In this document: positions 6,201-63,448 of the stretch, one piece after another
Numbering within the stretch: position 1 is the first letter of the stretch
Layout of the letters: every line of letters begins with the position of its first letter
Assembly (NCBI RefSeq): GCF_003918875.1
Contig: NW_025767522.1
Coordinates: 310,001 to 374,000 of the forward strand
Source: Haliotis rubra
Lineage: Eukaryota
DNA length: 64,000 bases
Reading direction: 5' to 3'
The notes under the pieces: model-generated
The model's input: the letters and a program-made list of their open reading frames with translations, nothing else
Database searches by the model: none
Told to the model about the DNA's origin: nothing
Translations under genes and position numbers: made by a program

Positions 6201-9200
6201 TGTGCATATGTTGTGTAAGGTAGGCAGGCGCAAAAATGGTTCTGATTATTTTCAAAGTCCACTGGACATTTGTAATTCCGAATAATTAGAAAATAAGTAG
6301 CTGTTTCAATATAGGTTTCAAACCGTGATATAACTGAAAAGTAAGGTTCAAAACGGCATTAAATGAGTGAGTGAATATGGTTTTTCATCCCTTTTAGCAA
6401 TTTTCCAGCGATTTTACTTCGGGTGACACCAGAAATGGTCTTCAGACATTGTACCCATGTGTCGAATCGACCCTGGGTCTTCGGCCTGACGAGCGAACTC
6501 TTCAACTACCCCACCACCCTTCTTAACGGCATTAAGGGGCGGTGCGGTAGCCTAGTGGTTAAAGTGTTGGCTCGTCACGCCGAGGACCCGGGTTCCAATC
6601 CCCACATGGGCACATTGTGTGCAGCCCATTTCTGGTGTCCCCCGCCATGATATTGCTGGAATATTGCTAAAAGCGGCGTAAAAACCATACTCACTCACTC
6701 ACTCTTAACGGCATTAAGACGGACCAACTTGTTTATACGCACTTATAACAACCCCTTTTCACTTGGTTGTGTACCACCTATGATAACTACCTAACAACAG
6801 ACATCACTTTAGTATCGACATGCAACAAATATTATTTGTACGTCGAACATATGCTCTTTTGTAAAACAGCACGGTGCTTGATAACTTAAGCTAATAAATT
6901 CAATATATTTCTATTGGATAGACAATTTGGTTGTTATATTGAGAACACTATGCCAATATTCCACAGGCAGAAGGCGAAGGAGTATCCCCGAGATACGGTG
7001 ATCCTTCATCAGATCGGTAGAGGTCCTTACGCCCCCAGCATGACGCCGTTTGCTGTGAAGCTGGAAACCTATCTCCGGATGGCCAGGATACCCTACCAGG
7101 TGGTGAATGATGTGTTGAGTGAGTGAGTGAGGTAAACCACTGGGAAGGACAGAACAAACCATCCAAGCAACAGACCATTATACACAGTCAGCCAGGTACA
7201 CATTGTTACCACCCGATACGCATAACTCGACTCCGACTACTCTGACTACAATGCCAGAGTTTCAATGAGTTACTGAGTGAGTATGGGTTGACGCCGGTTT
7301 TAGCAACATTCTAGCAATATCACGGCGGGGTACACCAGAAATGGGCTTCTCACATTGTACCAATGCGGGGAATCGAACCCGGGTCTTCGGCGTGACGAGC
7401 GAACGCCTTAACATTAGGCTACCCCACCGCCCCCCGAAAGTTTGGTAATTTGAACGTGGCTGTGGCACGTTGGTGGTCAGATCATCGCAGATCGTACAGA
7501 AACGTGAAGATCCGGATTAGAATAATATTATTGTTCTTCAGCAACCCATGCTTGTCGTAAGAGCAGACCAATGAGATCAGGCTTGCTGACATGGTTGACA
7601 CATCGATAAGAGATCGATGATCATGGTCCAGACTCTTTTATTTACAGACAGCTGGAATATTGCTGAGTGCTGCAACAACAAGCAAACAAAATCAGATCGT
7701 ACAGATATTTGGCTGCTGTGTTAGGCACCAACAGGGTCCAAAAGCATGTCTGAAATGCTCTATAATTTGTGTCCAGTAGCGAGATGAACCCTCCATGTCA
7801 ATGTTACCCTGCTGGTATTGCTAATGGGACTGGGGAATGATACAGAATGAAAAGTATCAATCTCTGTCTCTCAGGATTAGTATTTTGCCATCTTCACGTT
7901 TGTTTGTTTGTTTATTTAAGATGTCCTCATGTAAGCCACATATGGTAATAAAATGTAATTTGAAAGAGCCTTGAATTAATAGTACAAGTAACTTTTGCTC
8001 TGTGATCTTCCACTCAGAACCTCCAAGGGCTGAAAATGTCATCTAAGGGCAAGGTCCCCTGGATTGAGTATAATGGGAAGGCTGTGGCGGATTCGACATT
8101 ATGTATTGACTTCCTGAACGAAAAGCTGGAAGTGGACCTCCACCAGCACCTGAGTCCCCGGGACAAGGGTGCAGCTATGGCAATGCAGGTCATGACGGAG
8201 GAACATCTGTACTGGTGAGCCTAGAAAATGTTTGTTAGGATCGGTACAATGAAACCATTAAGATACATTCTACTATGAATTTGGAAAAAAAAACACGTAC
8301 ATGTGCCCGATCGATTTGAGGTTTCAAATAGCAATAACCGTTTCTGTGTGAAAGGTCGTGTTCTCGATGAAGTTAAAATATCATATAAAAGTCCCCCCCT
8401 GCTGATTAACATCGTTGACTGAAGGTATTTTGAATATATTTTGTGTAAATATTGGGAAAGTCTCATTTATTATCACTTAAAACATACTTTTCCAAATCAT
8501 TTCAAATATACTGAGGGAAACAAATAAAGGAACACAGGACAGTTCAAGCGTTCCTTTAATATATTCCAGTTTTCATCACCAGCTTGTGATGAATGGCGCT
8601 GTGGGAGGAAATCTGAGGAACACTGCAATGAAGTGGTGTTCCCTTATTTATTTCCTTCAGTATATGTCACTTAAGCTGTTGATGACTGACGATGTCCCTT
8701 GCTTCACGCTAATTACAGTCTGGACCTTGACTGGAAGCGGACGCACGACGTCGGAACTTCCCTTTAATACATGTAGTAATACTCTTTAACCAGGCCATGT
8801 AAAAGAACGTTATATCCTATGGTTAATACACGAATAAATATTAATGATAATGAACAGTTAGATTTGTGTTTCAGGTTCCTTGCTCTATTCCGCTACCAAT
8901 ATGACAACGACAAAACCTTTATTAAGCAAACGTTGAAGATAGGATGGTTTGTTGTACGGATTGCCAAGTATATGGTTGCAAATTCAACATGGTATCAAGG
9001 TTTGGGTCGCCACACAGAAGAGGAAGTGACACAGATGTTTAAGAAGGAGCTACAGGCTCTTTCTGACTTCATGGGTAAATCAAGCCCACAGGGCGTGTCA
9101 CGCTTAGAAACAGCGTTAGAAAGACATATAGGTATATAGACCCTACCCTAGTACTATATAAAAGGAAAGGGATGTAACGACGGAACCACCCCCTCCTCAG

Positions 9201-10689: not shown

Positions 10690-10932
10690 TGGTGAAGGTC
10701 CGGGTTAGAATGAACCTTCATTAACCCATGCTTGTCGTAAGAGGTGATTAACGGGATCGGGTGGTCAGGCTCGCTGACTTGGTTGACACATGCCATCGGT
10801 TCCCAATTTGGCAGATCGACGCTCATGCTATTGATCACTGGATTGTCTGGTTCAGACTCGATTATTTACAGACCGCCGCCACAAGGCTGGAATATTGGTG
10901 AGTACGGCGTAAAACTAAACTCACTCACTCAC
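10690..10932 (+). mobile_element. Near full-length S2 SINE; other copies near 7503-7688, 12985-13165, 15163-15253, 21486-21689, 24415-24627(-), 26010-26205(-), 57245-57428, 60930-61172
   Basis: Shared consensus from tgaaggtccgggttagaat to (actc)n; no tRNA A/B boxes. Confidence 0.85.
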
Positions 10933-11521: not shown

Positions 11522-11645
11522 TTTCTTTGAGTGGCACTTTAGCAGTTGGGAAGTACAATATAGAACAAACTTTATGGATAACAACTTCGTTTTATTCCTG
11601 AGTACGACGTTTCGATACAGATTCTTGTACCGTTCTTGTACCGTA
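11522..11645 (-). mobile_element. Penelope pLTR fragment with partial hammerhead-like motif
   Basis: Reverse complement matches about 16090-16195 (ggtacaagaatc..tatcgaaacgtcg..gttgttatccataaa..ctgctaaagtg). Confidence 0.75.
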
Positions 11646-23577: not shown

Positions 23578-26500
23578 TCACTTGCTTGCCTCCCTTGTTC
23601 CACCGTGCGTGATGCACTGGTCCCAGTCCGGCCAGAATGCTTCCTTCATACGTTCACAGTAGGCGGCAGGTTGGGATAATTATCTGGGGAAAATAAGATG
23701 TTATCAACAAAAATGTTCCACAAACACCACTATGCATATGTCATACATGATACACAAATACTTCAGAAGAGACAAAACCGACGAGAGTTTAGAGCAATTT
23801 CTTTAGCCATAACGTAAACTTCGTCCAGAGTGCTATTGACTGCGGAGAACTGCGGGTCTCTGGCGTGACGAGCGAACGCTTTAACCACCAAGCTACCCCA
23901 TCGCCCACGTTGATACTGACTTATACAGCATTTGCAAACATCACACACTTTCTATAAGAATAATTGAAAATTTCTCAAAACCCTTTCATGTGGAATTCAC
24001 ATCGCGAATATGTATGAAAAGTGAGTGGAATAGAACGCTTGTCACATTTTACTACTCAGGAATAACAATGACGTATATGTGACGAGAGTGAAAATTTCGA
24101 TTAGGTAATTAATTGGAATATCACTGCCAACCTGTTTTCCGGGTTTCACCTTTTATGAGACTCTCAAATCCAGATCCATTAAACTGCCAATATGCCTGAG
24201 ACAGCATACCGAACAGAGAGCAATCCGCTTCACAGGGATCATCTCCCATCAGGAACTTCTTCCTCCCTAGTATACAGGATGTAACTTAGTTAATAATGTC
24301 CCTGTACCTGTACCTCCATTCAGATTGTACAGGATAAGTATGTATAAACCATATCAAGTTATCTAACAAAGGGGAAAAAATATAAATATTTCCTTTTCGA
24401 TTTCCATACAGTTGGTTGTTTGGTTTGTTGTTTAATGCCGCTCTCATAATATTCCAGCTTACAAGACCAAACAATCCAGTGATCAACAGCATGGTCATCG
24501 ATCTACGTAATGGGGATACGATGACATATGTCAACCAATCCAGCGAGCCTGACCACCCAATCCCGTTAGTCGCCTCTTACCACAATCACGGGTTGCTGAA
24601 GACCAATTCTAACCCGGATCTTCACCGCTAGATTTCCATACAGCATCGAAGAGAAGAGGGATTATGATATTCATGTCCTCTGTTGGTTTTTCTCCATTGT
24701 TACTGGTTAATTATAATGCAGGGACATTCAAACATGTGGTCGGCGCACGTTAAAAGAGTAAAGGCTTCTTGAAACAACTGACCGTCTGGTTTGGGGCGAT
24801 TGGGAAACTTAAGGTTTATAAATTATAGACTTACGTAACCTATATACTTAATCACTAAATATAACAATATATGAAAATCTCTTCATTTCAGTCTGGAGCC
24901 AAAGGGTTGCAGAATTGGATTCGAACCTTAAGTTGGGGTCAAAATTATATTTCTGAGTTTCTGTCTCAGACCTGCAAAACTTTGGGTTGAGGTACTGCCT
25001 CCTGTTCAAAGCAAGTTGATACAGGTTGTGTTTGTTTTGTCAGTTTCGTTTGTTCTTTTAAGCCTCGCATGGCACTAGTCCAACTGCAAGACAGCGGACT
25101 GTGGATATTCGAGATTGTACCGGGCAATCCTGTGAATGATATTTAGAGGCATGTTTCAAGCCGTCATCACACGCTATCAAACCAGTCTGTTAGAGTGACT
25201 ACCGATCCGTTTGGTCACCTATTACTACCAACACAACACAGTGACCTGTTCTAACCAGGGTGCCGTTCCACGAAAGCCTCTTAGCGCTACAACGTCTTAA
25301 ACCACATCGTAAACCAGGGCCCCGTTTCACACCGGGGTTCTATCATAGCACCACGAATGTCGTACGTCCTATACTGTAACATAGGCTTACAACAGCTCTT
25401 AAATTTTTATCTTAGTGGAAGGGTCGTAAATCATTACGCTGGGACATCCTAAAGTCGGTCGTATCCGCTAGGACGTCGTAGCTATGAGAGGCATTGGTGA
25501 AACGGCAACCACAGGGTCCCGTTTCACAAAGCTATCGTAGCGCTACGACTGTCGTACCTCCTATACTGTAACATAGACTCACGACAGTCGTAGCAGGAAC
25601 CTCCAAGGTGAATGTACCCAGTAATATAACCGAATGACTATTCAAAGACTCACTACCAAACTCAATTTTCACAAAAAATACCTATAAAGTCGGAGATAGA
25701 TTGGAAGTCCTTATACATCATTTCGACGACCTCTTCCTCCGTGTGGCGACCCTATCCCTGACTCCATGTTTGTTTTCTGATATGTCGTCGTATCATCCAT
25801 AGAAAGAACTTGGAGAATTTAAACGTTTCCAAAATAAACGATGCGTCTCTGCTGTACAACCAGCAGATTTGGGCAAGCAGCCTGGATCGGAATTTCAAAT
25901 CATCAGTACGTTGGTTGATTCGTGGAAATATGGTATATGTCAACATAGGGAATTGCATCAGACATAATTTTTGTCAGTGATGCGTCAATTTTTTAAATGT
26001 CTTCCATATGAGTGAATTTTATTTTTACGCCGCACTGAGCAATAGACCAGCTATATGGCCTGTAAATAATCGAGTCTTGACCAGACAATCCAGTGATCAA
26101 CAGCATGTGCATCGATCTACGCAATGGGGATACGATGACATGTGTCAACCATGTCAGCGAGCCTGACCACCCTATCTCGTTGCATGGGTTACTGAAGACC
26201 AATTAAAGTTGACATAACAGTACAGATGTTCCTCCGTCATGACCTGCATCGCTTGCGCTATACCCTTGTCAGCTGGACTCAGGGGCTTGTTGAGGTCCAC
26301 CCCAAGCTTCTGATTGAGGAAATGTATACACAGCGTGGTGTCCCCAATAGGTTGGCCATTGTACTCAATCCAGGGGACCTTGCCCTTAGGTGAAGGTTGC
26401 ATTCCATGGACGTTCTATGGAAAACGTGACACGGCATGAGGAACTATGCGCAGAAGAAAAACTGTGACTTATGTGAATATATACCATTCAAAAAAAGTAG

Positions 26501-29866: not shown

Positions 29867-30214
29867 TGAGGTGAAATTGGGTTTAACGTCGTACTTGAGA
29901 ATATTTCGCTCATATGATGACGTGCATGCGTGTGTATGTGTATGTGCGGCTGCTTGTACTAGCCCAGACTGAAGCTGGTTTTATAGTGCTAGCCCACTGA
30001 GATACCATGCCGCAGTGAAGCATGAATACCCCACTCAGACACATTATACTGACTCCGAGCCGACCAATCCTTGTTGTACCCATTAATGCCGAGCGCCAGG
30101 CAGGGACCAACAAGTACCATATTTTAACGTCTTTAGGTATGACGCAGTCGGGGATTGAACCCGCGACCTTCCGCTCTCCGGGCGGACGCTCTAACCACTA
30201 CACCACGGAGGCGG
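29867..30214 (-). mobile_element. Full-length Meta-like tRNA SINE (family S3); 5'-truncated copy 62008-62267 (+)
   Basis: tRNA head, Meta-like core, (CA)-rich stretch and tail gagcgaaatattctcaagtacgacgttaaac; TSD ttggataactttaga / ttgggtaactttaga. Confidence 0.85.
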
Positions 30215-47670: not shown

Positions 47671-48251
47671 TAACTTTTTCGTACCCTTTTAACGAACACC
47701 TGGCCTGAACACTAATTTGCAGTGATCTATTGGTATAGTGTTCACACCTGTTTCCCCATTTACACCATACAGAATTTGTTTCTGAGGATAGACAAGATTG
47801 GATAATTCATTCGAAGTGACGTTCTATATTTGATACCTCTCTTCAAGGAAAATGATATACTTTATGATTGTTTTCCAGACATCCTTGCTATTCAATTCAG
47901 AATATTCTTTCATTAAGAAAGTAACACACATCTCTGACGTCGTTGATATGGATGGCATGCATGGTTCTAAAACACAGTTATAAAGGAATACATAGCGGTG
48001 GCGAACACAAAGGAATAAATACCGCCATGTCATAAATTATTAGAAAGTGCAGCCTATGTCAAAATGACTGCTTTATGATTCTGCTCCTGTGAGGCCAAAC
48101 AGGAGTCGTGTAAGGTTAATATTTCACAAGGAACTAAGGCACCTACTATCTGGCAGGGATGTGGGCTATCTTACTGTTGAGGGAGAACAAGAGGATGGGT
48201 AGCAGTTTCAGTTTGATGACTTCCTCTCCTACTCTGTCGAGGACTATTGAT

Positions 48252-50583
48252 TTATTGAGGACACAAGACAGATATTGTAAACACTTCCTTCACACGTTCA
48301 CAGTAGACGGCCAGGTTGGGGTATTTGTCTACGAACAAAAGGGAGAGGACATAAGCATCACGTAATTAACAACAAATGATAACTGTAATTCATATGTAAC
48401 CAGCTAGATCATTTCAATTTATCCAAATTAAACAAATTCATACAGAACTGAAACATAGTCAAAATACATTGAGAATTGAAAGTTAAAATCTTCAGGTAAT
48501 GATGTAGTTTGGTGGATTAATTGTGTTGCCTTTGTTTTTATGTATATTTGAATCAGTCTGATATCGAAAATGTCAATCTAACGGAAAGAAATACACAACT
48601 CCCTTTATACATGTAACGACATATTGACAGCCAGTTACAATAATGGAGGAATATTTGTCAAACTTGATTCTGTTGATGTTTATCGACTGATACGGTTTAC
48701 ATACCTATACAACACATTTTGTAATTGTGATGAGGAAAAGGTAGGTGTACATTATGTACGCTATGTTAACAGTACCCTGCAATGTTTTGAGGTTGGTACA
48801 GAGTTCTTTAATGTATGGTTCTGAGCCAGGAAATCTCTGGTCATTCTGAACGAATATGTAAAGAAACCTGACGCAACTATTGGTAATTATAGAGAAACTA
48901 TGCATCAACCATGTTATGGTATTAAGTCAGGATGAGAGTGGGGGTGGGGGTGGTGGTGGAGAAAAGAAATGTTTTTAAACCTGTGAAGTAGAAATAATAA
49001 CTTTAAAAGCAACAAAATGATCCTACGCTACCGTTCTTGTAACTGGTTCTGTGCCAGGGATTCTCTGGTCATTCTAAACGAAAATTAAAAGTACAACTGA
49101 TGCAACCATTTGTGATTATTGAGGAACTATACATCAGCCATGGTTTGATGAGAGAGAGAGGAGGGGGTGGGGGTTTGGGGGTTGGAGTTCAAAACCGTGA
49201 AGTGGAAATGATAACTTAAAAGTCACTTGCCCTTGAGGATGTCCTTATGTCCAGTGCCCATGAACTGCCAGTAGAACTCTGACAGCTGGCCGAACACCGC
49301 ACAGTCCGTCTCACAGGGCTGGTCCCCCATCAGGAACTTCTTGGTCCCTGGAACAACCAGCATGTGTGGCCAGATGAATATATTGAAACAAAACAAATCA
49401 CATGAAACAAAGTATCATCGCTCCTGAAATATAACAAACCACACCACAAGTGCCAAATTTCAGGATACAGTTTCATCCTATTCAACACATGTGGAGGAGG
49501 TCATGGAACGTCATGCAATATTTTCCAACTTCAGTTATGATGCAATCAAGATCCCATCGTCTGTATTGCCATTGTCGGTTTCGATATAACAAGTGTCAAG
49601 TATATATTGTGGTCCATCGGAACCTTCCCTCACTGCTCAAACATATTTAACGTCTCTGTATATAATTCAGTTCACAACAGCTTGAAACTTCTGCATACCT
49701 ATGAAGTCCGACAGGGATTGTAGATCCTTCTTAAACATTTCTGTTCCCTCCTCTTCTATGTGTCGGCCCAAGCCTTGACTCCATATTTGCTTTTTTACTT
49801 GTCGTTGAAACATCCAAAACATAAACTTGCCTATTTTAAAAACATTCAGCATGAAAGATTTGTCGTTGTCATATTGCCATCGGAAGAGGACAAGGAACCT
49901 GAAACCACAGTACCACAGTACTACTCATTCACTATTCATTCATGCAAGCAACCTATGATGGAAATTGCCAGAAGTTTATCTTAAAGACGTAATGTGTCCC
50001 CCTAAAACATAACACCTGTCGAAAGTTACAAAACATCGTACATCGTGTATTAACGTATTTTCGTTTGACGCCGTTACGTGAGTGAGTGAGTGAGTGAATT
50101 TGGTTTTACGCGGCGTTAGCAATATCACGGGAGACACCAAAATGGGCTTCACACATTGTACTCATGTAAGGAATCGAACCCGGGTCTTCGAACAAACGCT
50201 TTCAACACTAGGTTACCCGCGTAAGGGATCGAAGCACAGGATAGAATGAGCATGATGTTAATCACTGCATTGTCTAGTTCCGACATGTACACACCGCTAT
50301 CATATACAAGGATTATTCAAGCAATCAATGTTTGCCGTAATGGCCACGATGGACAGACAAATTAAATGGCACCAACTGACTGTTTCTCACCAGTACAGAT
50401 GTTCCTCCGCCATAACCTGCATCGCCTGAGCTACTCCTCTGTCAGCAGAACTCAGGTTCCTGTTGAGGTCCACTCCCAACTTCTTGTTGAGGAACTCGAT
50501 GCACTGTGTCCGCCACTGCCTGTCCATTATACTCAAATCCAAGTGAATTTGCCCTTTGATGAAGGTTGAAACCCATGGACGTT
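48252..50583 (-). pseudogene. FAX-like copy F (duplicate of B): exon 3 50583-50391 (frameshifted), exon 4 49898-49699, exon 5 49347-49231 (GC donor), exon 6 from 48328, truncated near 48279
   Basis: Exon 3 is 193 vs 197 nt; exon 5 reads TKKFLMGDQPCETDCAVFGQLSEFYW; exon 6 runs into inverted sequence. Confidence 0.87.
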
Positions 50584-50595
50584 CTGTGTGGACGA

Positions 50596-50654
50596 GGCAC
50601 CCCTTGAAGAGCAACCCCCTCGTGGTGGGTGCTGGGTAACGCCAATGGCTCTTT
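50596..50654 (+). ncRNA. Compact HDV-like self-cleaving ribozyme fold at the LINE 5' end
   Basis: P1 GGCACCC/GGGTGCT (G1-U wobble), P2 GAAGAGC/GCTCTTT, P3 ACC/GGT, L3 CCCTCGT, P1.1 CC/GG, J4/2 GCCAA; starts exactly at the insertion junction. Confidence 0.8.
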
Positions 50655-50730
50655 GCCCCCGTGTGGACCCGGGGTCGAATAGGTCCACAGCACCCCATTG
50701 CTGGTTGTAAGAGGCGACCAAATTGGGCAA
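50653..50730 (+). ncRNA. Second pseudoknotted RNA element in the LINE 5'UTR, homologous to the S2 SINE head
   Basis: Outer TTGCCC/GGGCAA, stem TGTGGACC/GGTCCACA, loop-flank pairing GGGGT/ACCCC, hairpin GGTTG-taagagg-CGACC; compensatory changes versus SINE copies. Confidence 0.7.
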
Positions 50731-51247
50731 CCCGTTTGCCCTGGGTTGCATCCCTGTGTCGGCAGAGGAAGGGAGTCTGGTGGTTGAGGATGACGGAACC
50801 GGCAATAGTGTTCAATAATCCAACACACCACTTCGACACTAACTTTGCCTAGACGGGTGGTAGAATAGGCCCGATTCTACCAATCGGCTGGTCACGCTTT
50901 GCCCTGTGCATGGAATGTCTATACAAAATTTGGTATTACATAACACTTTTGACAATGTTCAAAATGTTAACTTATATTCTACCAAAACAAATTAGCCTCG
51001 CAGACCCATGCACAGAAGGCGGTGGCTCATGGGCCAATCTGGTGATGCTGACCTCCGATTTCTGTACGTCTCCAATTGATTGTCATGGACAGAACCATCC
51101 TGACCTTTAATCTGGTAGGCAGCTACACCATTTCATGTCAAATTCGCTGGAGTATAACACCCCCTTATCCCTGGTCTTTGCAGCTTGGAGACCCGCTGCA
51201 GTATAAGATCGTCCTTGTTGACACTCCACGGTGGGTGGGGAGAGGGG

Positions 51248-52528
51248 ATGCCGAACCACATTACTAACGACATGGCTTCCCAATACCCAGGTTCAAAACG
51301 AAGACACATGGATACTGACAACTCCTCGTCTGACGAGAGTACGCCCCTCCGACCTGACCACTGGCCACGTTTCCTGATCATTTAGGCTTGTGACAAGCAA
51401 CCTTTGCAATTGAACCCTTTTGCAATCTCCAAAGGTATCGTTGGTATCTGTGGAGAGGTTGCCAATGTTACAAAGCTTCGATCTGGCTCTCTTCTGATAG
51501 AATGTACCCGGAAACAACAATCACTAAATCTCCTCAAAATACAAGAATTTGTCAATATCAAGGTCGCTCTCTCAGCACACAAAACACTTAACTCGTGTAG
51601 AGGCATTGTGCGGGACAGAGCTCGATGCCTGTCTGACATGACTGAAGAACAAATTGTCAAGGAACTCTCTCAGCAATCCGTCACAGCCGTAAAACGATTC
51701 ACCTTCAAAAAGGACGGTGTTGTTCAACCAACGAACACCTATCTCTTCACGTTCGCGCGAGCAAACATTCCTGACTCGATTAGAGCTGGTTATTGTAGCA
51801 TTGGAGTGGAGGTGTATGTCCCCAATCCACTCCGGTGCTACAACTGCCAAAAGTTTGGACATGGATCCAAGTCCTGTCGTTCCTCTGCTGTTTGTTACCG
51901 CTGTGGTGACAAGCATGAGGGCAACGACTGTACTAAGGAAGTGAAGTGCACAAACTGCGGTGGTAACCATATGGCCTCTTCCAAGTTCTGTCCAGTGTGG
52001 AAACGCGAATCCGAGATACTAAAGATCAAGCACAAAGTAAATATCTCCTTTCACGAAGCAAAGAAGAGGGTTGCAAGTTTAACTGCAGCCCCTTCAACCA
52101 TCACCTACTCTTCTGCTGTCTCCCGTCCTACAATCACTACTGCAACCATCTCATGTCAGACCGACCTGACATGGATCATGTCTTCTCAGCCAACTGAACT
52201 CAACACAACTCAGCCTATCTCAGCAACTCCATCTCCAACGCCAAAAGTCAAAACCTCTGAATCACAAACACCAGAACAAATGCCAAAACCAGAAACAGAA
52301 ACTGCGCGCAGAAAAAGGGAAAAAAAGAGTCTAGAGAGACTAAAACAACTTGAACAACTGCCAAACACAAAACCAAAGGCCACCTCTCCTTCAGAGGTCC
52401 CCATCGAGGTCCATAACTCCTTTGGCCCTCTGGATATGGAGGAAACTCCAACTCCACCTCACACCAATAGGAGTTCATCAAACGCTTTCTCACGTTCACG
52501 TGACATGTCACCAGTGGAAGCACCATGA
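51248..52528 (+). CDS. LINE ORF1 gag-like nucleic-acid-binding protein (one in-frame TAG at 51383-51385)
   Basis: WPRFLII*..NPFAISKGI..KLRSGSLLIEC; YVPNPLRCYNCQKFGH, CYRCGDKH and CTNCGGNH zinc knuckles; Pro/Thr-rich tail. Confidence 0.88.
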
Positions 52529-53166
52529 ATCCACAAAACATGATCCAATGGAATTGCAGAGGACTTAAGAATAATTATAATGAATAACAGCTATTTATTC
52601 AAGACTTCATACCAACATGCGTTAAAAATATGGTACTTGTTGGTCCCTGCCTGGCGCTCGGCATTAATGGGTACAACAATGACTGGTCGGCTCGGAGTCT
52701 TTTTAATGTGTCTGAGTGGTGTATTCATGCTTAACTACGGCATGGCATGTCAGTGAGCGAGCTCTATAAAACCAGCTTAAATCTGGGCTAGTACAAGCAG
52801 CCGGAATGCAGTCTCATATTGTTAATCATACACGAGGAGTCTTCTGAACAGAAAAAAATATACAGTCGAGCACCTTTAAGTTTATGTCAGCGACAAGTGA
52901 GAATAATCAGCTGTTCCTTGATCTATTACAGTATTTTATAGAGAGAAAAAGACAAAGAAGGACTGTGAGACAGACTATGTTTGACCCTACACAACGAAAA
53001 TAAGGGCGAAAACGACTGTCTATCTACCCGATCCAACTGACAGTCCAAGGCCCTTACCACTTATGCCCCTTTTCAACATGATCTTGAAATACCGATAATC
53101 ATGGTGGATGTTATTTAGGTCGGCCAGTTTAACACAGCGTGGGTTCAGTGACATACCCAGAAAACG

Positions 53167-56100
53167 ATGGAGAGTATCGTGGATAGTTTCACCGACCTGG
53201 ACACATCACAGAAAGTACTGTATGTTGTCGGAGGTATTGTCGCATCAACCGTATCGGTCGTCGGCCTGAGGAAACTATGTTTCAAGTAAGTATCTCGTGT
53301 GAATAGCTAGTCAAGAGATACTCACTCGATATTTCCCTAAACAAACGGATGACCCAGTTGTCGACGTCGCTCTGCAGAGCGTCGTGCAAAATGTCCACTG
53401 AAGTATGGGTTGGAATACAGGCTCGCCCCTCTATGTGAGCACAATACGCGTGCTCGTTGTGTAGGGTCAAACATAGTCTGTCTCACGGTTGCTGATTGGC
53501 ATTATTATTTTCCTCTTCGCCCTTTCTGCAGCGGAAAGCACTGTATGAAGCACACTAGATTTCCTCAGGTTCTGAATCTCCCTTCTTACTGGGGCTCCTA
53601 TGCAATTTCAAAGGAAGTAAATATTCAAAGATAAAGAGTCAGCATAGGTCAAGTGTGGTCAAATGTACGTCGTTACGGGATCATTACATCTTCAGTTTTT
53701 TATAACTGTCATGCTACATTTTATTTGTTTGCCATATGTGCTTGAGTGTGATATTTCTGCTCGAGCATAAACTCTTGCTCTTTACGTCGGTGTGTTCACC
53801 CACTTACGGCCGGTATCCAGTTCAGGTACATACTAGTCGACGATTCACGAACCATGGAAGGGACATTTGGACACTTTCGTAGACGGGTCACAGAAAATTG
53901 CATATGCAGTCGGAGGTGTTGTAGTAGCTGTTGCATTGGTCGTCGTCCTCAGGAAGCTCTTGTTAAAGTATGTAGTAACATCTAGTTATCAAGTCAGCTG
54001 CGGAAACCACCGGTGAACGATTGTTTTGATACCCAGAGAAAACTCGCCGGGTATATCACAGTACAGTTTTTGTATCGAACGGAAAGGGCTGCATGTCTTA
54101 GTCTATGTATGTATGAAGTCGTACCTATATGTAACAGTAAACAAAAGTACTGTGTTATTTAAAATGATAAAATCTTTTGGTACAGCCCTGACCTCGATCG
54201 CCTTTTCGATATACATAACTTTCAGTGACTGAGAACGAAAGGTCAAAGGTCAGATCAAAGGTCAAAAGTTAGAACAAGCACCCAAACCGAAATCCAGGTC
54301 GTGAACAGAAAGAGACATATTTTCAGAGTTTAACAGTCATTATTCAAATATGTTAGACCCTTTTAAAGGTTCTGGATTATCGCACTGGGTTACCAGGTTT
54401 TCTGGTTACTATAACAACAGGCGGTTTGCGGGTGTGCTAAACAGGCTTACATTGACCTTGAATATCAATACGTCCAGATTCCTATGTACATGATGACAGT
54501 GTACGGTTCTCGGTGTGAGGGGCGGTGGGGTAGATAGTGATGGAAGCGTTCGATCGTCATGCCGAAGATCCGGGTTCGATTCCCTGGATGAGTACAATGT
54601 GTGAAGCCCATTTCTGGTGTCCCCCACCGTGATATTGCTGGAATATTGCTAAAAGCTGCGTAGAACCCAACTCACTCACTCTCGGTGTGATCTGATAACA
54701 TTGAGTCGATAGTTTTCTGTAAATATATAAATAAACCAGAAGAACTATTCGCCAGGTCAGCACACACTGATAGTTGTGGTGGCCGTGGTTCCCTAGAGCA
54801 CCAAGCCTTACCCTCCGAAGGCTAATTGGAAATGATTAAGGGAGAAATGTTTTCAGTCTCTGTCTCTCAGGATTAATACTACTACGTTGCCACTTCACAT
54901 TTTGTTTGTTTGTTTACGATGTCCTCATATAAGCCTCATATGGTAATAACATGTATTTCGTAAGAGCTGTGAATAATGTGAATTACCCCACCTAGGCTAG
55001 GGGTGAGTACCCGCTCTTTGTTCCGGGACCAATATAGTCACACGAGTGAATTGAAATTTATACACACTCCGATCGCGGCACCGAGGTACATGTCTTAATA
55101 ATTATTATGTACAACTTATGTATGTTAAATACACATATGATGCACGAAATGGTTATGTTTACATATCTTTTGGTTGCAAGAATAGACTATGTCTACATGT
55201 ACATGCATTAAACCAGTTAAGACACAGATTAATGATACCACAGCACAGGACAGCATGACTGTCCATAAATGTAAAAGAAATAAGTGATAAGGATTAACAA
55301 TGGGGATTACATCTTATAATTTATAACATTAAGGGTTCGAGACAAACATATGTCAAAGTTAAATGGTAATTATCCTTTAGAACTACATGTTCGACCCGTA
55401 AAGATCCGGGTTAGAATTGACCTTCATTAGTGAGTGAGTGTGTTTAGTTTTACGCCGCACTCAGCAATATTTCAGCTATATGGCGGCGGTTTGTAAATAA
55501 TCTGGGCCCCGTTCCACAAAGCGATCGTAGCGCTTAGATCGCGAACCCCACGCTTTAACATAGACTTACGACTGTCGTAGCGTTACGATCGCTTTGAGAA
55601 ACGGGGCCCTGGCCTTCAGTAACCCGTGACTTGTCGTAAGAGGCGACCAACGGGATCGGGTGGTTAGGCTCGCTGGCTTGGTTGCCACATGTCATCGGTT
55701 TCCATTTGCGATGCTTATGCTGTTGATCACTGGATTGTCTGGTCTAAACTCGATTATTTACAGACCGCCGCCATATAGCTGGAATACAGCTGAGTGCGGC
55801 GTAAAACTAAATTCACTCACTCACTCACTAAATGTTCAATCCGACTGTATAGGTGCTGAACCACGTGATTGCAGTACGTAACATGGCATTTTCAAGTGAA
55901 ATAATCTTGACTTTAGTCATTCATATTGATATATTGACATGACCCATTGCTGCTCTTTCACAGTTGTGCGTATGTCGTGTAAGTTAGGCAGGCGCAAAAA
56001 TGGTTCTGATTATTTTCAAAGTCCACTGGACATTTTTAATTCCGAATAATTCTGAAAAATAAGTACCTGTTTCAATATAGGTTTCAAGCCGTGATATAAC

Positions 56101-59100
56101 TGATAAGTAAGGTTCAAAACGGCATTAAATGAGTGAGTGAATATGGTTTTTCATCCCTTTTAGCAATATTCCAGCAATTTTACGTCGGGTGACACCAGAA
56201 ACGGTCTTCTGACATTGTACCCATGTGTCGAATCGACGCCGGGTCTTCGGCCTGACGAGCGAACACTTCTTAACGGCATTAAGGGGCGATAGGGTAGCCT
56301 AGTGGTTAAAGCGTTCGCTCGTCACGCCGAGGACCCGCGTTCGAATCCCCACATGGGCACATTGTGTGCAGCCCATTTCTGGTGTCCCCCGCCATGATAT
56401 TGCTGGAATATTGCTAAAAGCGGCGTAAAACCATATTCACTCACTCACTCTTAACGGCATTAAGACGAACCAACTCGTTTATACGCACCAATAACAACCC
56501 CTTTTCACTTGGTTGTGTACCACCTATGATAACTACAGACATCACTTTATTATCGACATGCAACAAATTATATTTGTACATCGAACATATGCTCTTTTGT
56601 AAAACAGCAGGGTGCTTGATAACCGAAGCTAATAAATTCAATACATTTCTATTGGATAGACAATTTGGTTGTTATATTGAGGACACTATGCCAATATTCC
56701 ACAGGCAGAAGGCGAAGGAGTATCCCCGAGATACGGTGATCCTTCATCAGATCGGTAGAGGACCTTACGCCCCCAGCATGACGCCGTTTGCTGTGAAGCT
56801 GGAAACCTACCTCCGGATGGCCAGGATACCCTACCAGGTAGGTGAATGATGTGTTGAGCGAGTGAGTGAGGTAAACCACTGGGAATGACAGAACAAACCA
56901 TCCAAGCAACAGACCATTATACACAGTCAGCCAGGTAGACATTGTTACCACCCGATACGCATAACTCGACTCCGACTACTCTGACTACAATGCCAACGTT
57001 TCAATGAGTTACTGAGTGAGAATGGGTTTACGCCGGTTTTATCAAAATTCTAGCAATATCACGGCGGGGTACACCAGAAATGGGCTTCTCACATTGTACC
57101 AATGCGGGTGATCGAGCCCGGGTCTTTGGCGTGACGAGCGAACGCCTTAACATTAGGCTACCCCACCGCCCCCCAAAACAGTTTGGTCATTTGAACGTGA
57201 TTGTGGCACGTTGGTGGTCAGATCATCGCACATCGTACAGAAACATGAAGATCCGGATTAGAATAATATTATTGTTCTTCAGCAACCCATGCTTGTCGTA
57301 AGATTAGACCAATGGGATCAGGCTCGCTGACATGGTTGACACATCGATAAGAGATCGATGATCATGGTCAAGACTCGATTATTTACAGACAGCTGGAATA
57401 TTGCTGAGTGCTGCAACAACAAGCAAACAAAATCAGATCGTACAGATATTTGGCTTCTGTGTTAGGCACCAACAGGGTCCGAAAGCATGTCTGAAATGCT
57501 CTATAATTTTTGTTCAGTAGCGAGATGAACCCTCCATGTCTATGTTACCCTGCTGGTATTGCTAATGTGACTGAGGAATGATACAGAATGAAAAGTATCA
57601 ATCTCTAGATCTGTCTCTCAGCATTAGTATTTTGCCATCTTCACGTTTGTTTGTTTGTTTGTTTGTTTGTTTGTTTGTTTGTTTATTTAAGATGTCCTCG
57701 TGTAAGCCACATATGGTAATAAAATGTAATTTGAAAGAGCCTTGAATTAATAGTACAAGTAACTTTTGCTCTGTGATCTTCCACTCAGAACGTCCACGGG
57801 CTGAAAATGTCATCTAAGGGCAAGGTCCCCTGGATTGAGTATAATGGGAAGGCTGTGGCGGATTCGACATTATGTATTGACTTCCTGAACGAAAAGCTGG
57901 AAGTGGACCTCCACCAGCACCTGAGTCCCCGGGACAAGGGTGCAGCTATGGCAATGCAGGTCATGACGGAGGAACATCTGTACTGGTGAGCCTAGAAACT
58001 GTTTGTACAATGAAACCATTAAGATAGATTCTACTATGAATTTGGAAAATACACGTACATGTGCCCGATCGATTTGAGGTTTCAAATAGCAATAACCATT
58101 TCTATGAGAAAGGTCGCGTTCTTGATGAAGTTAAAATATCATATAAAAGTACCCACCCGCCCACCCCCCAACCCCCTGCTGATTAACATCGTTGACTGAA
58201 GGTATTTTGAATATACATGTATTTTGTATAAATATTGGGAAAGTCTCATTTATTATCACTTATAACATAATTTTCCAAATCATTGCAAATATACTGAGGG
58301 AAACAAATAAAAGAACACAGGACAGTTCAAGCGTTCCTTTAATATATTCCAGTTTTCATCACCAGCTTGTGATGAATGGCGCTGTGGGAGGAATTCTGAG
58401 AATAAATAAAGGAACACTGCAATGAAGTGGTGTTCCCTTATTTATTTCCTTCAGTATATGTCACTTAAGCTGTTGATGACTGACAATGTCCCTTACTTCA
58501 CGCTAATTACAGTCTGGGCCTTGACTGGAAGCGGACGCACGACGTCGGAACTTCCCTTTAATACATGTAGTTGGTTTGTGTGATATCGTCACTCTTTAAC
58601 CAGGCCATGTAAAAGAACGTATATATCCGCTGGTTAAACACGAATTAATATTAATGATAATGAACAGTAAGATTTGTGTTTCAGGTTCCTTGCTGTATTC
58701 CGCTACCAATATGACAACGACAAAACCTTTATTAAGCAAACGTTGAAGATAGGATGGTTTGTTGTACGGATTGCCAAGTATATGGTTGCAAAATCAACAT
58801 GGTATCAAGGTTTGGGTCGCCACACAGAAGAGGAAGTGACACAGATGTTTAAGAAGGAGCTACAGGCTCTTTCTGACTTCATGGGTAAATCAAGCCCACA
58901 GGGGCGTGTCACGCTTAGAAACAGCGTTAGAAAGACATATAAGTGTATAGACCCTACCCTAGTACTATTATATAAAAGGAAAGGGATGTAACGACGGAAC
59001 CACCCCCTCCTCAATCTAAGTTAGATTTCACCACGTAAACTATTTTTAAGGCCCCGTCGAGGCCTACGGATCAAATGCAAGATGATTTCCCTACCAAATG

Positions 59101-60718
59101 AGCTATAAATAGTCACAATCGGATCATTATTTCAAAAGTTATACGCCACGACTCACCGAAAACAGCTACCTCCGCAATTCCAAGCCAAAATCATGGATCA
59201 CCCAAGACAGCGAAAACTCACCTTTTAAATTCGTTTATTAATTCCAGCCACGTTGACAGCACCTATGTAGGGCTAAGTTCGATCGGCAGCGCCATTCCAC
59301 GGGTCTAAAAACCTTTTGCAACATCTACAAATCATTGATTGAGGAGGGGGTGGTTCCGTCGTTAAACCCCTTTCCTTTTATATAGTACTAGGGTAGGGTC
59401 TATATACCTATATGTTTTTCTGACGCTGTTTCTAAGCGTGACACGCCCCTGTGGTCAAGCCGACATATTTGTTTTCTGTGACACTATCTTGTATGTACCT
59501 GAAGTTTTACATACCAGATCAATTATTTTATCAACAGAGACATTATGGGTACAGAAGAATCCGTGACTATATTTACAACTTCAGACATCAACATGTATAT
59601 TTATGATATCGCAATGATACCTGGGTAGCAACTATTCATGGAAAGCGTGCTTGATAATTGTCTTGACATACACAAGATACACCGGCTGAGTCATTCTCAA
59701 GGAGTTCAAGCCAAAGTCACTCCGCCTCAGTAACGTCTCACCCACAAAGAAGCCCGCTGAAAATACGAAAGGATGCACGTACAATTGACGACCATATAGC
59801 TTGAGATACAGGACAAAGATGTTTATGCAGGCGAATAGGGTCACATGTTTGCAGCACTGTTTATATACTAGTCAGTAATAGTTACTGCCTACTAGCTGAC
59901 CCGTGACGATCAGGGTTACAATTGGTTAGCAGCAACCCATGTTTGTCGTAAGAGGTGACTGGAATATTGCCGAGTGCGGTGTTAAGCTACAAGCCAGCCA
60001 AAACCTAAAAGCTAACTTAGAACACAATGGATTTTACAATGTCATGCATCAGTTCTCTCAAAGTGAACCACAAGCATACAATTCATGACACAGCAATGAT
60101 ACATCGGTGCCAAGTGTCTGTGTACTGCATGTTCCTTTATATTCCTTCTATTTTCCTCTCGTCTCAGGGGAGAGGAAGTTCCTGATGGGAGATGAACCTT
60201 GTGAATCTGACTGCGCGGTGTTCGGACAACTGTCTCAGCTGTACTGGCATTTTCTTGGAACAGGGCATGAAAATCTCATCAGAGGTACCACATTAAATAC
60301 ATAATTTTTATATTTATTCATTTTCGCATCAAAGTGCCAGGACTGCATCGAGGTCAACATATAAAACCTACATTCGTTTTTGATGGTTAAGGGCAGTTTG
60401 GTACATGTGTGCTGTTACGTAATAGATTGCAGGTATTTGTGAAGTGGAAACTTGGTACATGTTAAGATGTAATCCTGATGCATCATTTTGTCTTTAGAGA
60501 CAGTGACAAATTACAAAGATACTCATACTGTTCTTTCTGTTTATTTATATGATGTTTAAACAGTCAGTCATATATTTAACATTTATTATCTCGTATTGTT
60601 CCTTGTCCTAGACAAATACCCAAACCTGGCCGCCTACTGTAACCGTATGAAGGAAACATTCTGGCCTGACTGGGACCAGTGCATCACTCATGGTGGAACA
60701 AAGGAGGCAACCAAGTAA
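53167..60718 (+). CDS. FAXC: Failed axon connections homolog (FAX/FAXC-like, metaxin/GST-like), copy E, intact 290 aa: exons 53167-53285, 56705-56837, 57789-57985, 58685-58884, 60168-60284, 60612-60718
   Basis: Exon lengths 119+133+197+200+117+107 = 873 nt, all AG/GT, no stops. TM anchor, GST-N-like (PFAVKLETYLR, KGKVPWIEYNG..DS) and GST-C-like (KFLMGDEPCESDCAVFGQL, YPNLAAYCNRMK..FWPDWD) regions. The choice of first exon is inferred. Confidence 0.88.
57646..57684 (+). repeat. (GTTT)n microsatellite, longer than its counterpart near 7897
   Basis: Direct reading of the sequence. Confidence 0.9.
58897..59453. mobile_element. Longer copy of the P-like MITE of 9087-9535
   Basis: Same TIRs, TSD atcaagcc/gtcaagcc, about 110 extra internal bases. 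Confidence 0.85.
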
Positions 60719-63448
60719 AGGGAGACAACACGGTGTGGACATTTGCACCACATTAATTTTATACCCTGTTTCTTTAGTTTTATGATGGGAGTCCAAAGAT
60801 ACCTGGTATATAGATATAGTTCACCCGGATTACTGACTGACCATAATGGATAATGTCTCACATCAGCTTTAGTTCCTTCGCCTTTTCACATGGTTAACTA
60901 TTTTCTCATATATTTCTTGTTTATCTAACCGGTGAAGGTCCGGGTTAGAATGAACCTTCAGTAACTCATGCTTGTCGTAAGAGGTGATTAATGGGATCGG
61001 GTGGTCAGGCTCGCTGACTTGGTTGACACATGTCATCGGTTCCAAATTGCGCAGATCGACGCTCATGCTGTTGATTATTGGATTGTCTGGTCCAGACTCG
61101 ATTATTTACAGACCGCCGCCACAAGGCTGGAATATTGCTGAGTGCGGCGTAAAACTAAACTCACTCACTCACTCTTGTATTCCTCTGTCACAGACAAGGC
61201 ATTATTTTTCAAGATTATACCCTTTGGACTACTTCACTCTTGAAAAGTATTGACTTTCCTTCTTGGGGGTCATTTAGACTACTTCACAGTGTGCCACAAC
61301 TGTCTATATGGTTGTCTCCCAAAACCACTACAACCCATAAACCCTACAGCCCAGTAACCCTACAATGAATTAAAACAACACGCGGCATTTACCTGTCTGG
61401 TATAATGAACTGACCCAAAGGAGAGATTACAGGATACAGATAAATAATTTGAGATGATTTTGGGTGGTATATACCAGGGGCGTTCAAAAAGTAGTCAGCC
61501 TAAGTATATTCTCGATGTCCAATGTTTGAAATGCTTCCATTTTATTTTGGAGAAATTATTAGCAAAGCCATATCCAAAATTTCACATATGTGGATGCGGT
61601 AACAACCCATTAAGGTATAATATTTCTTTAAAAAATGAAGGAAAATGAAAAACAATCATTTGGTACGTCTTGGATAATTGTGTACCCTCAGATAATATCA
61701 TAGAAAATATGTTCAGTATAATTTTGGATGACTACCCGTCATAATCAGCATTCAAAGATTTGGATTGCTTGATTTACATTAAGACGGGTGCTGTTTTTCA
61801 AGGACACCCCCATTTTAATCTTTCAAAAACATTGTGTCCAGATATTCATGCTGGCACTGTTTACAATATATTGAGAGCTGACACTTGTGTGACCATTACT
61901 TTTTTATGCACTTTAATATCTAAGTTTCATTCTAGCCGACTTCTGCCTGTCTCAAACACACAACATGTTTCTTGCATATTTTGTTTCCTAAAGTTTGTGG
62001 ACTTTATGGTACTTGTTGGTCCCTGCCTGGCGCTCGGCATTAATGGGTACAACAAGGACTGGCCGGCTCGGAGTCAGTATCATGTGTCTGAGTGGGGTAT
62101 TCATGCTTCACTGCGGCATGGTATCTCAGTGGGCTAGCACTATAAAACCAGCTTAAGTCTGGGCTAGTACAAGCAGCCGCACATACACATACACACGCAT
62201 GCACGTCGTCATATGAGCGAAATATTCTCAAGTACGACGTAAAACCCAATTTCACCTCACCTCACCTCCTAAAGTTTGTGATGCATTTATTGCAGATTTT
62301 TTCGTTTTGGGGGGGATATCAAGATAAAAAGTAAAAAAAAAAATGGGGATCGTGAGGCTGGAAAATAGCAAAACCAATTTGCTTGAGGCTGACACATAAT
62401 ATGTAGAAAAATAAAAACATGTTATGACATAATGATATTTAAAGAAGTTAATTAAACCTCAAGTTCAATATTATCGAACTTTTGTTAAAATATTTTAGTT
62501 ATCATCCATTAAAACCATTATCTCAAACCCAATTCCACCACCACCAGTTCGGCAAACACCGATAACACCGCGTGCGACAGTTTTCGATGTACGGAGCAAT
62601 CGTTTACATTCCATATATGACAAGTGTTATCTGTTTGGAAGCTGTATGCCTCGAAGTTTCAATTATCGATTTCAGGCAACAGGTACGGGATAATAAGTCT
62701 TCAACTGCATCAATAGGAAGCTTAAGTGAGTGCATATATGACTAAAATATAGGCCAAAATATAGTCGAAAATGTGTGACATTGTGCCTTTAACGTAGAGT
62801 TACGACAGTCATAGCTAAGATGGCTTGAGTCCAGACCCGATTATTTACAGACCGCCGCCATATAACTGGAATATTGCTGAGTGTGGCATAAAACTAAACT
62901 CACTCACTCACTTGAACATAAAAACAAGCAATTGAAGCATATATGTTATTAGTAACAGTTAATATGAGTAACAATTATTTAAAGCACTTACGTTCTTAAT
63001 ATTACCGAACACAACGTACATCAGTTAGATGTAAACAGTTACTCTGGATTAAAAGAAGTTGAATTCATTATACTTCTTCTCACAGGTCAGTGAATATTTC
63101 ATGAACAATAAAATATCTATGTGAGAGGGGTTTTGAGCATTATTTCGGCGACGTTATTCGCGCATCGTATTCGAAATCGAACCCGGGTCTTCAAACAAGA
63201 CAAAGTGATGTAACCACTTGGCTACACTAGTTCACATTCTTTCAAACATTTTCCGTTCCTGGAGTTCCCCGTCGATACACTGCTGAAATTCTGCGGCAAG
63301 AGCCGTAAAATTATATTCACTGATTCTCTTACACTCAAACACATATTATATGAATACATAATATAATTCAGCTCCATATTCGGTCAAACAATTATAATAT
63401 CTCATGTTTGAAGGCTTAATGGACGGGCAGTCACTGAGTTATCTCCCT

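Follow-up and report, generated by a model that had tools for sequence, protein, structure and literature searches.

An HDV-like ribozyme in tandem with an LP-type RNA module at the 5′ end of an abalone LINE

The window analysed here is a 64,000-nt stretch of the abalone Haliotis rubra (GCF_003918875.1, NW_025767522.1:310,001-374,000, forward strand), and all coordinates count from its start. The window is free of N runs. Positions 50596-50730 are the 5′ end of an abalone long interspersed nuclear element (LINE) of the I/Nimb type, at which two RNA modules stand in tandem. The first is a P4-less hepatitis delta virus (HDV)-like ribozyme, and the second is very probably the LP domain known from the short interspersed nuclear elements (SINEs) named LP-SINEs. 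The LINE copy occupies 50596..52603 on the forward strand and is deleted at its 3′ side, retaining the 5′ untranslated region (UTR), open reading frame (ORF) 1 and only the first ~20 codons of ORF2, with no LINE sequence beyond them. ORF1 (51185..52528, forward strand), recognised from the list of ORFs and their frames and from the Pfam family zf-CCHC_6, encodes three CCHC knuckles. Its in-frame stop at 51383-85 is private to the window copy; all related genomic contigs have G, not T, at 51383. The ORF at 51404-52528 is gag-like, with best homologues that are all uncharacterised Haliotis proteins (H. rufescens, H. cracherodii, H. asinina and H. rubra), and the homologues of the window ORF1 are Haliotis LINE ORF1s without exception. 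The assignment to the I/Nimb type follows from ORF2 of full-length relatives, which encodes APE endonuclease, reverse transcriptase and RNase H domains.

Comparison of the window with itself locates the first base of the element. Positions 571-1876 match 49290-50595 at 96% identity, a second match joins 2372-3545 to 52604-53776, and the LINE sits between the matched blocks in the second copy only, the LINE-free and LINE-bearing segments parting exactly at 50595|50596. In public assembled contigs from a DNA run, placed on 50300-51500, which do not reveal RNA ends, summed contig depth jumps ~200-fold near 50587, confirming that a high-copy family starts there. The family also looks recently or currently active in its ribozyme-headed branch, judging by two H. 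asinina loci on different chromosomes (L128 and L129, both 7327-13481). These are 99.87% identical over 6155 bp, both of their ORFs are intact (ORF1, 441 aa; ORF2, 1231 aa), and they are flanked by target-site duplications (TSDs) of 10-11 nt; it is the identity together with the intact ORFs that suggests recent activity.

The ribozyme (50596..50654, forward strand) was recognised from a sub-threshold Rfam match, pairing in eight copies, TSDs and the paralogous junction. Its helices are P1 (50596-602/50627-33, with a G-U pair at the base), P2 (50606-12/50648-54), P3 (50614-16/50624-26, with L3 CCCUCGU) and P1.1 (50618-19/50634-35). A 5-nt linker stands where P4 would be, and J4/2 reads C50642-C-A-A, in which C50642 is the putative catalytic residue. 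The Rfam HDV models RF00094 and RF02682 align to 50594-50688, both below gathering (25.8 bits with a threshold of 50, and 22.7 bits with a threshold of 44). Such scores are expected, since the ribozyme is P4-less and covariance models cannot score pseudoknots. We gathered LINE loci through their ORF1 proteins and aligned the ribozyme in eight copies from four Haliotis species. All 152 of 152 pair cells in P1, P2, P3 and P1.1 hold standard pairs, and pairing falls to 39-48% when partners are slid. There are three compensatory pairs, one in P1 (C-G/U-A) and two in P2 (A-U/G-C and A-U/C-G). The G-U at the cleavage site is invariant in 8/8 copies, as are C50642, A50644 and A50645, which align with C75-A77-A78 in the Rfam alignment.

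The 5′ ends of the copies agree with this structure. TSDs of full-length LINEs end just before G1 in L127 (TTAGAAAAAG), L128 (CAACTGCTTTG) and L129 (TTCTCCAAGA), and these three TSDs together with the LINE-free paralogous segment make G1 (50596) the first base of the element, a test of the outcome of cleavage and not of its chemistry. Comparison of the copies establishes the nested double pseudoknot and the 5′ ends, from which we infer cleavage at G1. The ribozyme would excise the element RNA from read-through transcripts exactly at G50596, and this G would become the first base of each new copy. A P4-less HDV-like ribozyme of Haliotis discus has already been published (Webb & Luptak 2011, as cited in PMC3774820). 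The present ribozyme resembles it, as well as the HDV-like ribozymes of R2, RTE and L1Tc, in its nested double pseudoknot and G-U cleavage site, in the 5-nt linker replacing P4, and in its placement at the first base of a non-LTR retrotransposon (LTR, long terminal repeat). Nothing essential differs from the H. discus ribozyme in the ribozyme itself. What is new relative to the known LINE ribozymes is its direct fusion to LP, and the presence within one LINE group of lineages with and without it.

The second module (about 50655..50727, forward strand) directly follows the ribozyme, as originally predicted, with the 3′ strand of P2 ending at 50654. Matches to it by nhmmer and by a covariance model were located in window SINEs, Haliotis LINEs, contigs of the European Nucleotide Archive (ENA), and contigs from metagenomes or IMG/VR. 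Covariance-model scores were 67-85 bits in the 5′ UTRs of those Haliotis and ENA LINEs that encode APE, reverse transcriptase and RNase H domains in ORF2. The set was widened by one metagenome and two IMG/VR pattern scans, filtered with nhmmer and the covariance model. The metagenome scan and the second IMG/VR scan were loose and returned mostly chance loci, and ~15 true LP instances remained after filtering. Searches with tblastn found no ORF1 or ORF2 homologues beside LP in the metagenome contigs. Rfam gave nothing on LP, whether the whole window was scanned at gathering thresholds or the LINE module, a pair of SINE heads and 11 metagenome contigs were scanned permissively, and searching the literature for literal sequence strings yielded chance 10-mer matches only.

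A domain fitting this module was described by Matetovici et al. 2016 (PMC4758252). There, the LP-SINE head is LINE-derived and ~70 bp long, and it shares homology with the opening 68 bp of the 5′ UTR in Nimb-17_LMi (locust), in I-3_DR (zebrafish) and in RTE-9_CPB (turtle). LP-SINEs were found in Littorina, Haliotis, oysters and scallops, and those of Haliotis have the hexamer ACTAAA ahead of terminal repeats. The module in the window is likewise a ~70-nt LINE-derived domain at an extreme 5′ end; it heads TSD-flanked SINEs that have no tRNA head, a Haliotis host and ACTAAA followed by tandem repeats, and it opens the 5′ UTR of Nimb/I-type LINEs. We conclude that it is very probably the LP domain (consensus Hdi_LP and Nimb-17_LMi), as judged by the published description. 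In the 2016 study LP is a sequence domain and putative promoter, whereas here it is treated as an RNA structure. The partner LINE of the Haliotis SINEs was called unidentified there, whereas here a LINE family carries both their head and ~60 nt of their tail. The abalone LINE LP also often has an HDV-like ribozyme upstream; neither an adjacent ribozyme nor RNA structure is discussed in that paper, and no later work on LP-SINEs was found in the literature searched.

The suggestion that this locus holds an undescribed system does not stand, as both modules have been published separately, LP in 2016 (PMC4758252) and the P4-less abalone ribozyme in 2011 (cited in PMC3774820). The related remark that the second module could not be assigned to a known class survives in that Rfam has no match for it; at the level of sequence, LP was already described (PMC4758252). 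As far as the literature found shows, four things are new: a covariation-supported RNA fold for LP, the direct fusion of LP and ribozyme, the decay of LP in ribozyme-bearing lineages, and one LINE family with both the head of the LP-SINE and ~60 nt of its tail.

LP copies beyond the window show further arrangements. Two units lie back to back at L105:1366-1519, and two lie ~110 nt apart inside an apparent repeated unit at L153:1-156 (minus strand). A divergent variant occurs in the IMG/VR contigs L134 (1796-1866) and L135, which are filed as viral and are probably eukaryotic repeats. Its helix I measures 4 bp, a small additional hairpin, GCCUUCAGGC, precedes that of GUCG-UAAGAGG-CGAC, and leader and loop pair as CGCCC/GGGCG. 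One metagenome LP family (L103, L054, L061 and L072) has a common stretch, CTGATGATGGACTGGAGTGAAAGAGGGGCCCCTC, ~60-120 nt downstream of LP. A hammerhead considered for this region in the L103 and L054 contigs (CUGAUGA...GAAA) was rejected, as no Rfam hammerhead match was obtained.

The fold of LP was assessed by column-wise pairing counts in a fixed-column alignment of 24 copies. The original prediction drew four pairings for this module, and all four complementarities are present in the window copy: TTGCCC 50653-58 with GGGCAA 50725-30, TGTGGACC with GGTCCACA, GGGGT with ACCCC, and GGTTG with CGACC. Helix I, the 8-bp stem, is the best supported of these. Its 5′ strand TGTGGACC (50662..50669, forward strand) pairs with its 3′ strand GGTCCACA (50682..50689, forward strand), with 84.8% of cells paired and double-sided changes at 5/8 pairs. 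For example, one position holds UA:14 AU:6 CG:2 GC:1 GU:1, and another GC:12 AU:10. In a permutation test comparing duplex energy with a sequence's own partner and with the partners of others, helix I gave z = -8.8. The helix encloses loop I, CGGGGTCGAATA (50670..50681, forward strand; family consensus CGGGG-UUAGAAU), which is highly conserved across taxa.

Hairpin II follows helix I and is bipartite. The upper hairpin GGTTG-TAAGAGG-CGACC (50703..50719, forward strand), with the consensus GUCG-UAAGAGG-CGAC followed by UAAA, is near-invariant in all taxa, and its GUCG/CGAC stem is 94.8% paired and almost invariant, as the prediction of a TAAGAGG hairpin would have it. Public genomic contigs give a C at 50706 in the family consensus. 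Below it, a basal helix pairs CCCA (50694..50697, forward strand) with TGGG (50724..50727, forward strand), and its 5′ strand overlaps the 3′ strand of the pseudoknot that had been predicted. The basal helix is swapped wholesale between groups (CCCAU/AUGGG, CCCAAU/AUUGGG, CCCG/CGGG, CCUGG/CCAGG, CCUCCU/AGGAGG and, in L136, AUCUU/AAGAU), gives z = -2.1 in the permutation test, and is predicted by the minimum free energy (MFE) fold of the 135-nt stretch. Its column-wise pairing of 69% is understated, because the basal helix of one group of sequences is shifted out of register in both the MAFFT and the covariance-model alignment.

The whole LP structure is 82.6% paired in the 24 copies and beats every shuffle and every slid control. 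Support for the fold comes from this comparison among copies; single-sequence folding is at the level of chance, with z-scores spanning -1.84 to +0.83 overall. The comparison points to LP as a structured, sense-strand RNA made up of a covarying 7-8-bp helix I with the conserved loop CGGGG-UUAGAAU, and of a hairpin II that combines a basal helix that covaries, a UAAA-containing internal loop, a near-invariant GUCG/CGAC stem and the loop UAAGAGG. That LP works as sense-strand RNA is suggested by pairing that survives sequence change and by the frequency of G-U pairs.

The remaining two predicted pairings are less secure. The G-tract of loop I (50671-74) is complementary to two C-tracts, one in the 5′ leader (50656-60) and one 3′ of helix I (50692-96). 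The original prediction used the 3′ tract (50671-75/50692-96) and combined it with an outer stem (50653-58/50725-30), the 8-bp stem and the TAAGAGG hairpin, and it likened the order of helices to an HDV core lacking P1. All of these pairings exist in the window copy. The outer stem, however, is only 43% paired among the 24 copies, no better than the shuffled and slid controls. It depends on T50654 and G50655, two bases found in the window copy alone (in run X2, the genomic contigs of almost every related copy have C at 50654), and the SINEs begin inside it. With the outer stem not conserved and the loop pseudoknot ambiguous, the resemblance to an HDV core finds no support.

Two versions of the pseudoknot therefore compete for one G-tract. 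The loop-3′ pairing is 86% paired in the 24 copies, with one-sided changes only (G-C to G-U), and it scores z = -3.2 in a 25-copy permutation test and z = -2.7 with 21 representatives. In the alternative, the leader tract CCCCCG (50656..50661, forward strand) would pair with 50670-74 (loop CGGGG) as the 5′ strand of a terminal H-type pseudoknot, for which the 25-copy test gives z = -2.9; both pairings score better than chance in the permutation tests. The abalone SINEs change the loop from GGGG to GGGUUAG, and both sides follow this change, the 5′ end with CUAACC (leader-loop CUAACC/GGUUAG) and the 3′ side with AACCC, where LINE GGGGU/ACCCC becomes SINE GGGUU/AACCC. The original claim that the SINE preserves the pairings by compensatory changes is thus borne out for the 8-bp stem and depends on this single event for the pseudoknot.

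The sequences that discriminate between the two versions favour the leader. Compensatory leader-loop variants occur in L136 (UCCG/CGGA), L229 (GCCG/CGGC) and L134 (CGCCC/GGGCG), none of which offers a 3′ partner for the loop; the basal helix of L136 has no C-tract. The leader version also has classical H-type geometry, its stems of 5 bp and 7-8 bp being separated by a loop of 0-1 nt and followed by an A-rich loop of 7-9 nt, UUAGAAUA. By that standard the loop-3′ version would be sterically strained, as 8 bp of helix would have to be crossed by a 2-3-nt linker, and the covarying basal helix competes for the 3′ strand of that pseudoknot. On the other side, the leader-loop pairing is 73.8% paired on the fixed alignment with zero covariation there, its z of -1.6 with the 21 representatives is marginal, and in most sequences the loop G-tract fits both C-tracts. 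We prefer the 5′-terminal leader-loop pseudoknot, at roughly equal chances either way, and regard the fold exactly as first drawn as distinctly improbable.

The same module heads a SINE family in the window, as had been claimed. Sensitive searches show that 50658-50722 recurs at the start of a short retroposon family. A full-length LP-SINE (60921..61176, forward strand; duplicate 10681-10936) starts with LP, ends in ...GTAAAACTAAA(CTCA)n and has a short TSD, TCTTGT. A second (24421..24630, minus strand) has the 13-nt TSD CTGTATGGAAATC and a related copy at 15156+ that is cut short. A third (7501..7693, forward strand; paralogous duplicate 57242-57434) has the 13-nt TSD CAGATCGTACAGA. In a fourth (55389..55830, forward strand, comprising 55389-55429 and 55610-55830; paralogous duplicate 5627-6066) the head is split by an insertion. 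The two 13-nt TSDs set the SINE 5′ end a few nt upstream of the 8-bp stem. The 3′ end, with ACTAAA and tandem repeats, is as in published Haliotis LP-SINEs, and over its last ~60 nt the SINE shows homology with the 3′ end of two Haliotis LINEs, L127 and L128, themselves ending in (ACTC)n. Carrying both head and tail of a LINE family, as LP plus ~60 nt of LINE 3′ end, the SINE probably uses the machinery of that LINE.

Rfam scans of two SINE heads found no tRNA or other match. A tRNA-derived RNA polymerase III head was rejected, since no tRNA model matches the heads and the B-box-like GGGTTAGAAT lacks the critical C and is only ~10 nt from the A-box-like start. Many of the SINE copies in the window are paralogous pairs and not independent insertions, because the window contains a segmental duplication. 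This duplication is ~12-14 kb long (1-11521 versus 47698-61762), with its copies ~48-50 kb apart and 86-97% identical.

Among LINEs, the ribozyme comes and goes upstream of LP. L006 is full length and ribozyme-free, and its TSD GTTGCTGCTACT puts its first base at CCCCG of LP. L001 (H. rufescens) and L133 also start at LP without a ribozyme, as do all the SINEs; within the LINE group of the window, some do. The locust, zebrafish and turtle LINEs likewise begin with LP (PMC4758252). In LINEs and SINEs alike, LP alone therefore appears to go with a defined 5′ end. Conversely, the ribozyme-bearing L128 and L129 (H. asinina) and L132 (H. rubra) have lost 39 nt comprising the 3′ C-tract and the whole UAAGAGG hairpin, and their loop I motif is altered as well. 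L128 and L129 are young and intact despite the loss of hairpin II. On the simplest reading, an element that began with LP acquired a ribozyme upstream and could then dispense with part of LP. An HDV-like ribozyme cuts read-through transcripts and so supplies a 5′ end that is defined and structured. Taken together, the gain of the ribozyme and the loss of LP parts suggest that the two modules would overlap in function.

We propose that LP acts in cis at the 5′ terminus to fix and/or protect the 5′ end of the template for retrotransposition, because the RNA/DNA copy starts at the LP leader in ribozyme-free LINEs and SINEs. This assignment of a role is tentative and falls somewhat short of an even chance; for the explanation as a whole, a tandem of ribozyme and LP with LP as a 5′-terminal RNA element, the chances seem to us about equal either way. 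LP may stall 5′-3′ decay of read-through transcripts, or it may bind a conserved host factor. In abalones, an HDV ribozyme gained upstream would have partly taken over what LP does, which could have allowed half of LP to be lost in ribozyme-bearing lineages of H. asinina and H. rubra. The 5′-OH ends left by a ribozyme are poor Xrn1 substrates. Flavivirus and plant-virus exonuclease-resistant RNAs (xrRNAs) are compact pseudoknots that define a new 5′ end a few nt upstream and are often duplicated in tandem, and they serve as a working analogy for LP fixing the 5′ ends of read-through transcripts. A stall site for 5′-3′ decay would fit all the arrangements found, as only the most 5′ unit would matter. 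The likeness to xrRNAs is one of reasoning only. LP, unlike the xrRNAs, has no three-way junction, and no Rfam xrRNA match was obtained on the LINE module or SINE heads at E up to 10.

Several observations weigh against this proposal. The MFE of the single window sequence is no better than that of shuffles (z = -0.88 for 50655-50728 and -0.38 for 50596-50730), and the sequences compared are related, so that independent compensatory events are few. The identification of LP is a match to a description, the published consensus alignment existing as a figure. Helix I still compensates among ribozyme-bearing copies (GGACC/GGUCC versus GGAAC/[U]UUCC), which indicates that LP is not wholly idle there and which a pure 5′-end-defining role leaves unexplained. 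Finally, a promoter role at the DNA level could coexist with one at the RNA level.

Such a promoter is the first alternative to consider. LP would be a DNA-level internal promoter, probably for RNA polymerase II, that initiates at its own first base, with the RNA structure secondary or otherwise used. LP does lie at the exact 5′ end of TSD-flanked SINEs and ribozyme-free LINEs, proteins could bind, as DNA, its long near-invariant blocks GTCGTAAGAGGCGACTAAA and CGGGG.TAGAAT, and a promoter role for the LP head of these LINEs has already been proposed by Matetovici et al. 2016 (PMC4758252). There is also a precedent in Pr77/L1TcRz, the ~77-nt 5′ module of Trypanosoma cruzi L1Tc and its non-autonomous partner NARTc (as described in PMC3185411 and PMC3383444), which is both a promoter and an RNA element (PMC3383444). 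Like LP, Pr77 is a 5′ module common to a LINE and a short non-autonomous partner and defines their 5′ end, acting at the RNA level in addition to its DNA-level promoter role. Pr77, however, is itself an HDV-like ribozyme, whereas LP has no P3/L3/P1.1 core, lies beside a separate HDV-like ribozyme and shows no sequence similarity to it. A 5′ module shared by a LINE and a SINE family is known also from Tx1 LINEs and SINEU, whose common 5′ ends are derived from small nuclear RNA (Kojima 2015, as cited in PMC4758252). There the module can be recognised as a small RNA of the cell that has a promoter of its own, whereas LP matches no known small RNA family.

The behaviour of the copies speaks against the promoter. 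Helix I and the basal helix keep their pairing through sequence change, with many G-U pairs, which argues for constraint on RNA and not on DNA, and there is no conserved initiator-like motif at the start. Initiation at the start of LP would strip the ribozyme, yet eight ribozyme-bearing copies from four species have exact G1 ends, a difficulty that spares the LP-first elements. We consider a promoter in place of an RNA element unlikely.

LP could instead be a binding platform, either a ribonucleoprotein-assembly or 5′-end signal for LINE proteins, or an element resembling an internal ribosome entry site or tethering ribosomes, which would serve the LINE RNA in its uncapped state and by which the SINE would capture nascent LINE protein. 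This would suit a module common to a LINE and to the SINE that carries the 3′ tail of the same LINE, near-invariant loops of the kind found in protein- or ribosome-binding sites, and a helix I that is still constrained to pair in ribozyme-bearing lineages. HDV-like ribozymes of LINEs are moreover reported to support translation initiation, according to the title of Ruminski et al. 2011 as cited in PMC3774820. Arguing against a LINE-specific protein, LP stands at the head of LINEs from unrelated clades, Nimb/I and RTE, and of SINEs whose tails differ (PMC4758252). The young H. asinina LINEs with intact ORFs do without hairpin II, and the SINE has no ORF to translate. These points make the platform unlikely.

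The most far-reaching version of our own proposal is that LP represents a new, phylum-spanning class of 5′-end-defining RNA, a pseudoknot that halts 5′-3′ exonucleolytic decay on read-through transcripts or otherwise processes itself. If this were true, LP would make the exact 5′ end of promoterless LINEs and SINEs and would be interchangeable with HDV-like ribozymes, hence the loss of LP after the gain of a ribozyme. For now we hold this to be improbable.

Self-cleavage by LP at its own 5′ edge, a second ribozyme having been among the functions first suggested, is very improbable: the 5′ end fixed a few nt upstream of helix I in SINEs and LP-first LINEs, the position shared with the HDV-like ribozymes of other LINEs, the near-invariant nucleotides with a possible pseudoknot, and the partial decay of LP once an HDV ribozyme lies upstream would all suit it, but an efficient cut there would remove the HDV unit, which is inherited in eight retrotransposed copies, the upstream unit of the LP tandems is likewise retained in L105 and L153, no Rfam ribozyme matches, and the topology lacks the P3/L3/P1.1 core. 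Rfam gave no match to hammerhead, twister, pistol, hatchet or other small ribozymes on LP or the SINE heads. HDV-like, pistol, hatchet and tRNA-like folds were each rejected for LP, as the helix order is wrong, the conserved cores are missing and Rfam is blank.

The 5′ UTR of the LINE has further structure downstream of LP. A hairpin GCAACCC/GGGTTGC (50727-50749) comes directly after LP and covaries, reading GCAGCC/GGCTGC in L001 and GCGGCC/GGCTGC in L133. Next comes a block, CCCTGTGTCGG..GAGGA.GGGA..CTGGTGGTTGAGG (50750-50800), that hardly varies among Haliotis and ENA LINEs. The SINE has neither this hairpin nor this block. A second covarying hairpin lies at 50857-50882 (GGTAGAAT...ATTCTACC in the window), with counterparts in L130 (GGTAGGAT/GTCCTATC), L131 (GGTAAGAT/GTCTTATC) and L132 (GGTTGAAT/GTTCAATC); for this hairpin, Rfam yields a chance-level microRNA match only.

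The surroundings of the insertion are themselves repetitive. The LINE was inserted ~3 nt before the end of another repeat family with at least five copies in the window (50400-50595, and also 1677-1876, 26227-26419, 57777-57976 and 8006-8205). A separate and abundant tRNA-derived SINE family is present at 2303-2449, 30068-30214, 7300-7433 (minus strand) and many other places, with Rfam tRNA matches at 7365-7422 and 30140-30204, both on the minus strand. The deletion that truncated the LINE also took the 5′ half of one of these tRNA-derived SINEs (2303-2372 versus 52604).

How non-LTR retrotransposons and SINEs obtain a heritable, defined 5′ end without an upstream promoter is a long-standing problem, to which internal promoters and HDV-like ribozymes are the known answers. 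LP is a third type of module that recurs at this position, and by the literature it is spread over molluscs, insects, fish and a turtle (PMC4758252). Comparison of LINE and SINE copies and an Rfam search, checks of the kind that the original prediction had proposed, found covariation in helix I and in the basal helix and no Rfam family for LP, making LP a candidate for a new one. Previously known only as a conserved sequence, LP can now be described as a covarying RNA structure that is able to sit directly behind a ribozyme. The series of ribozyme and LP gains and losses among these LINEs offers natural material for testing what LP does.

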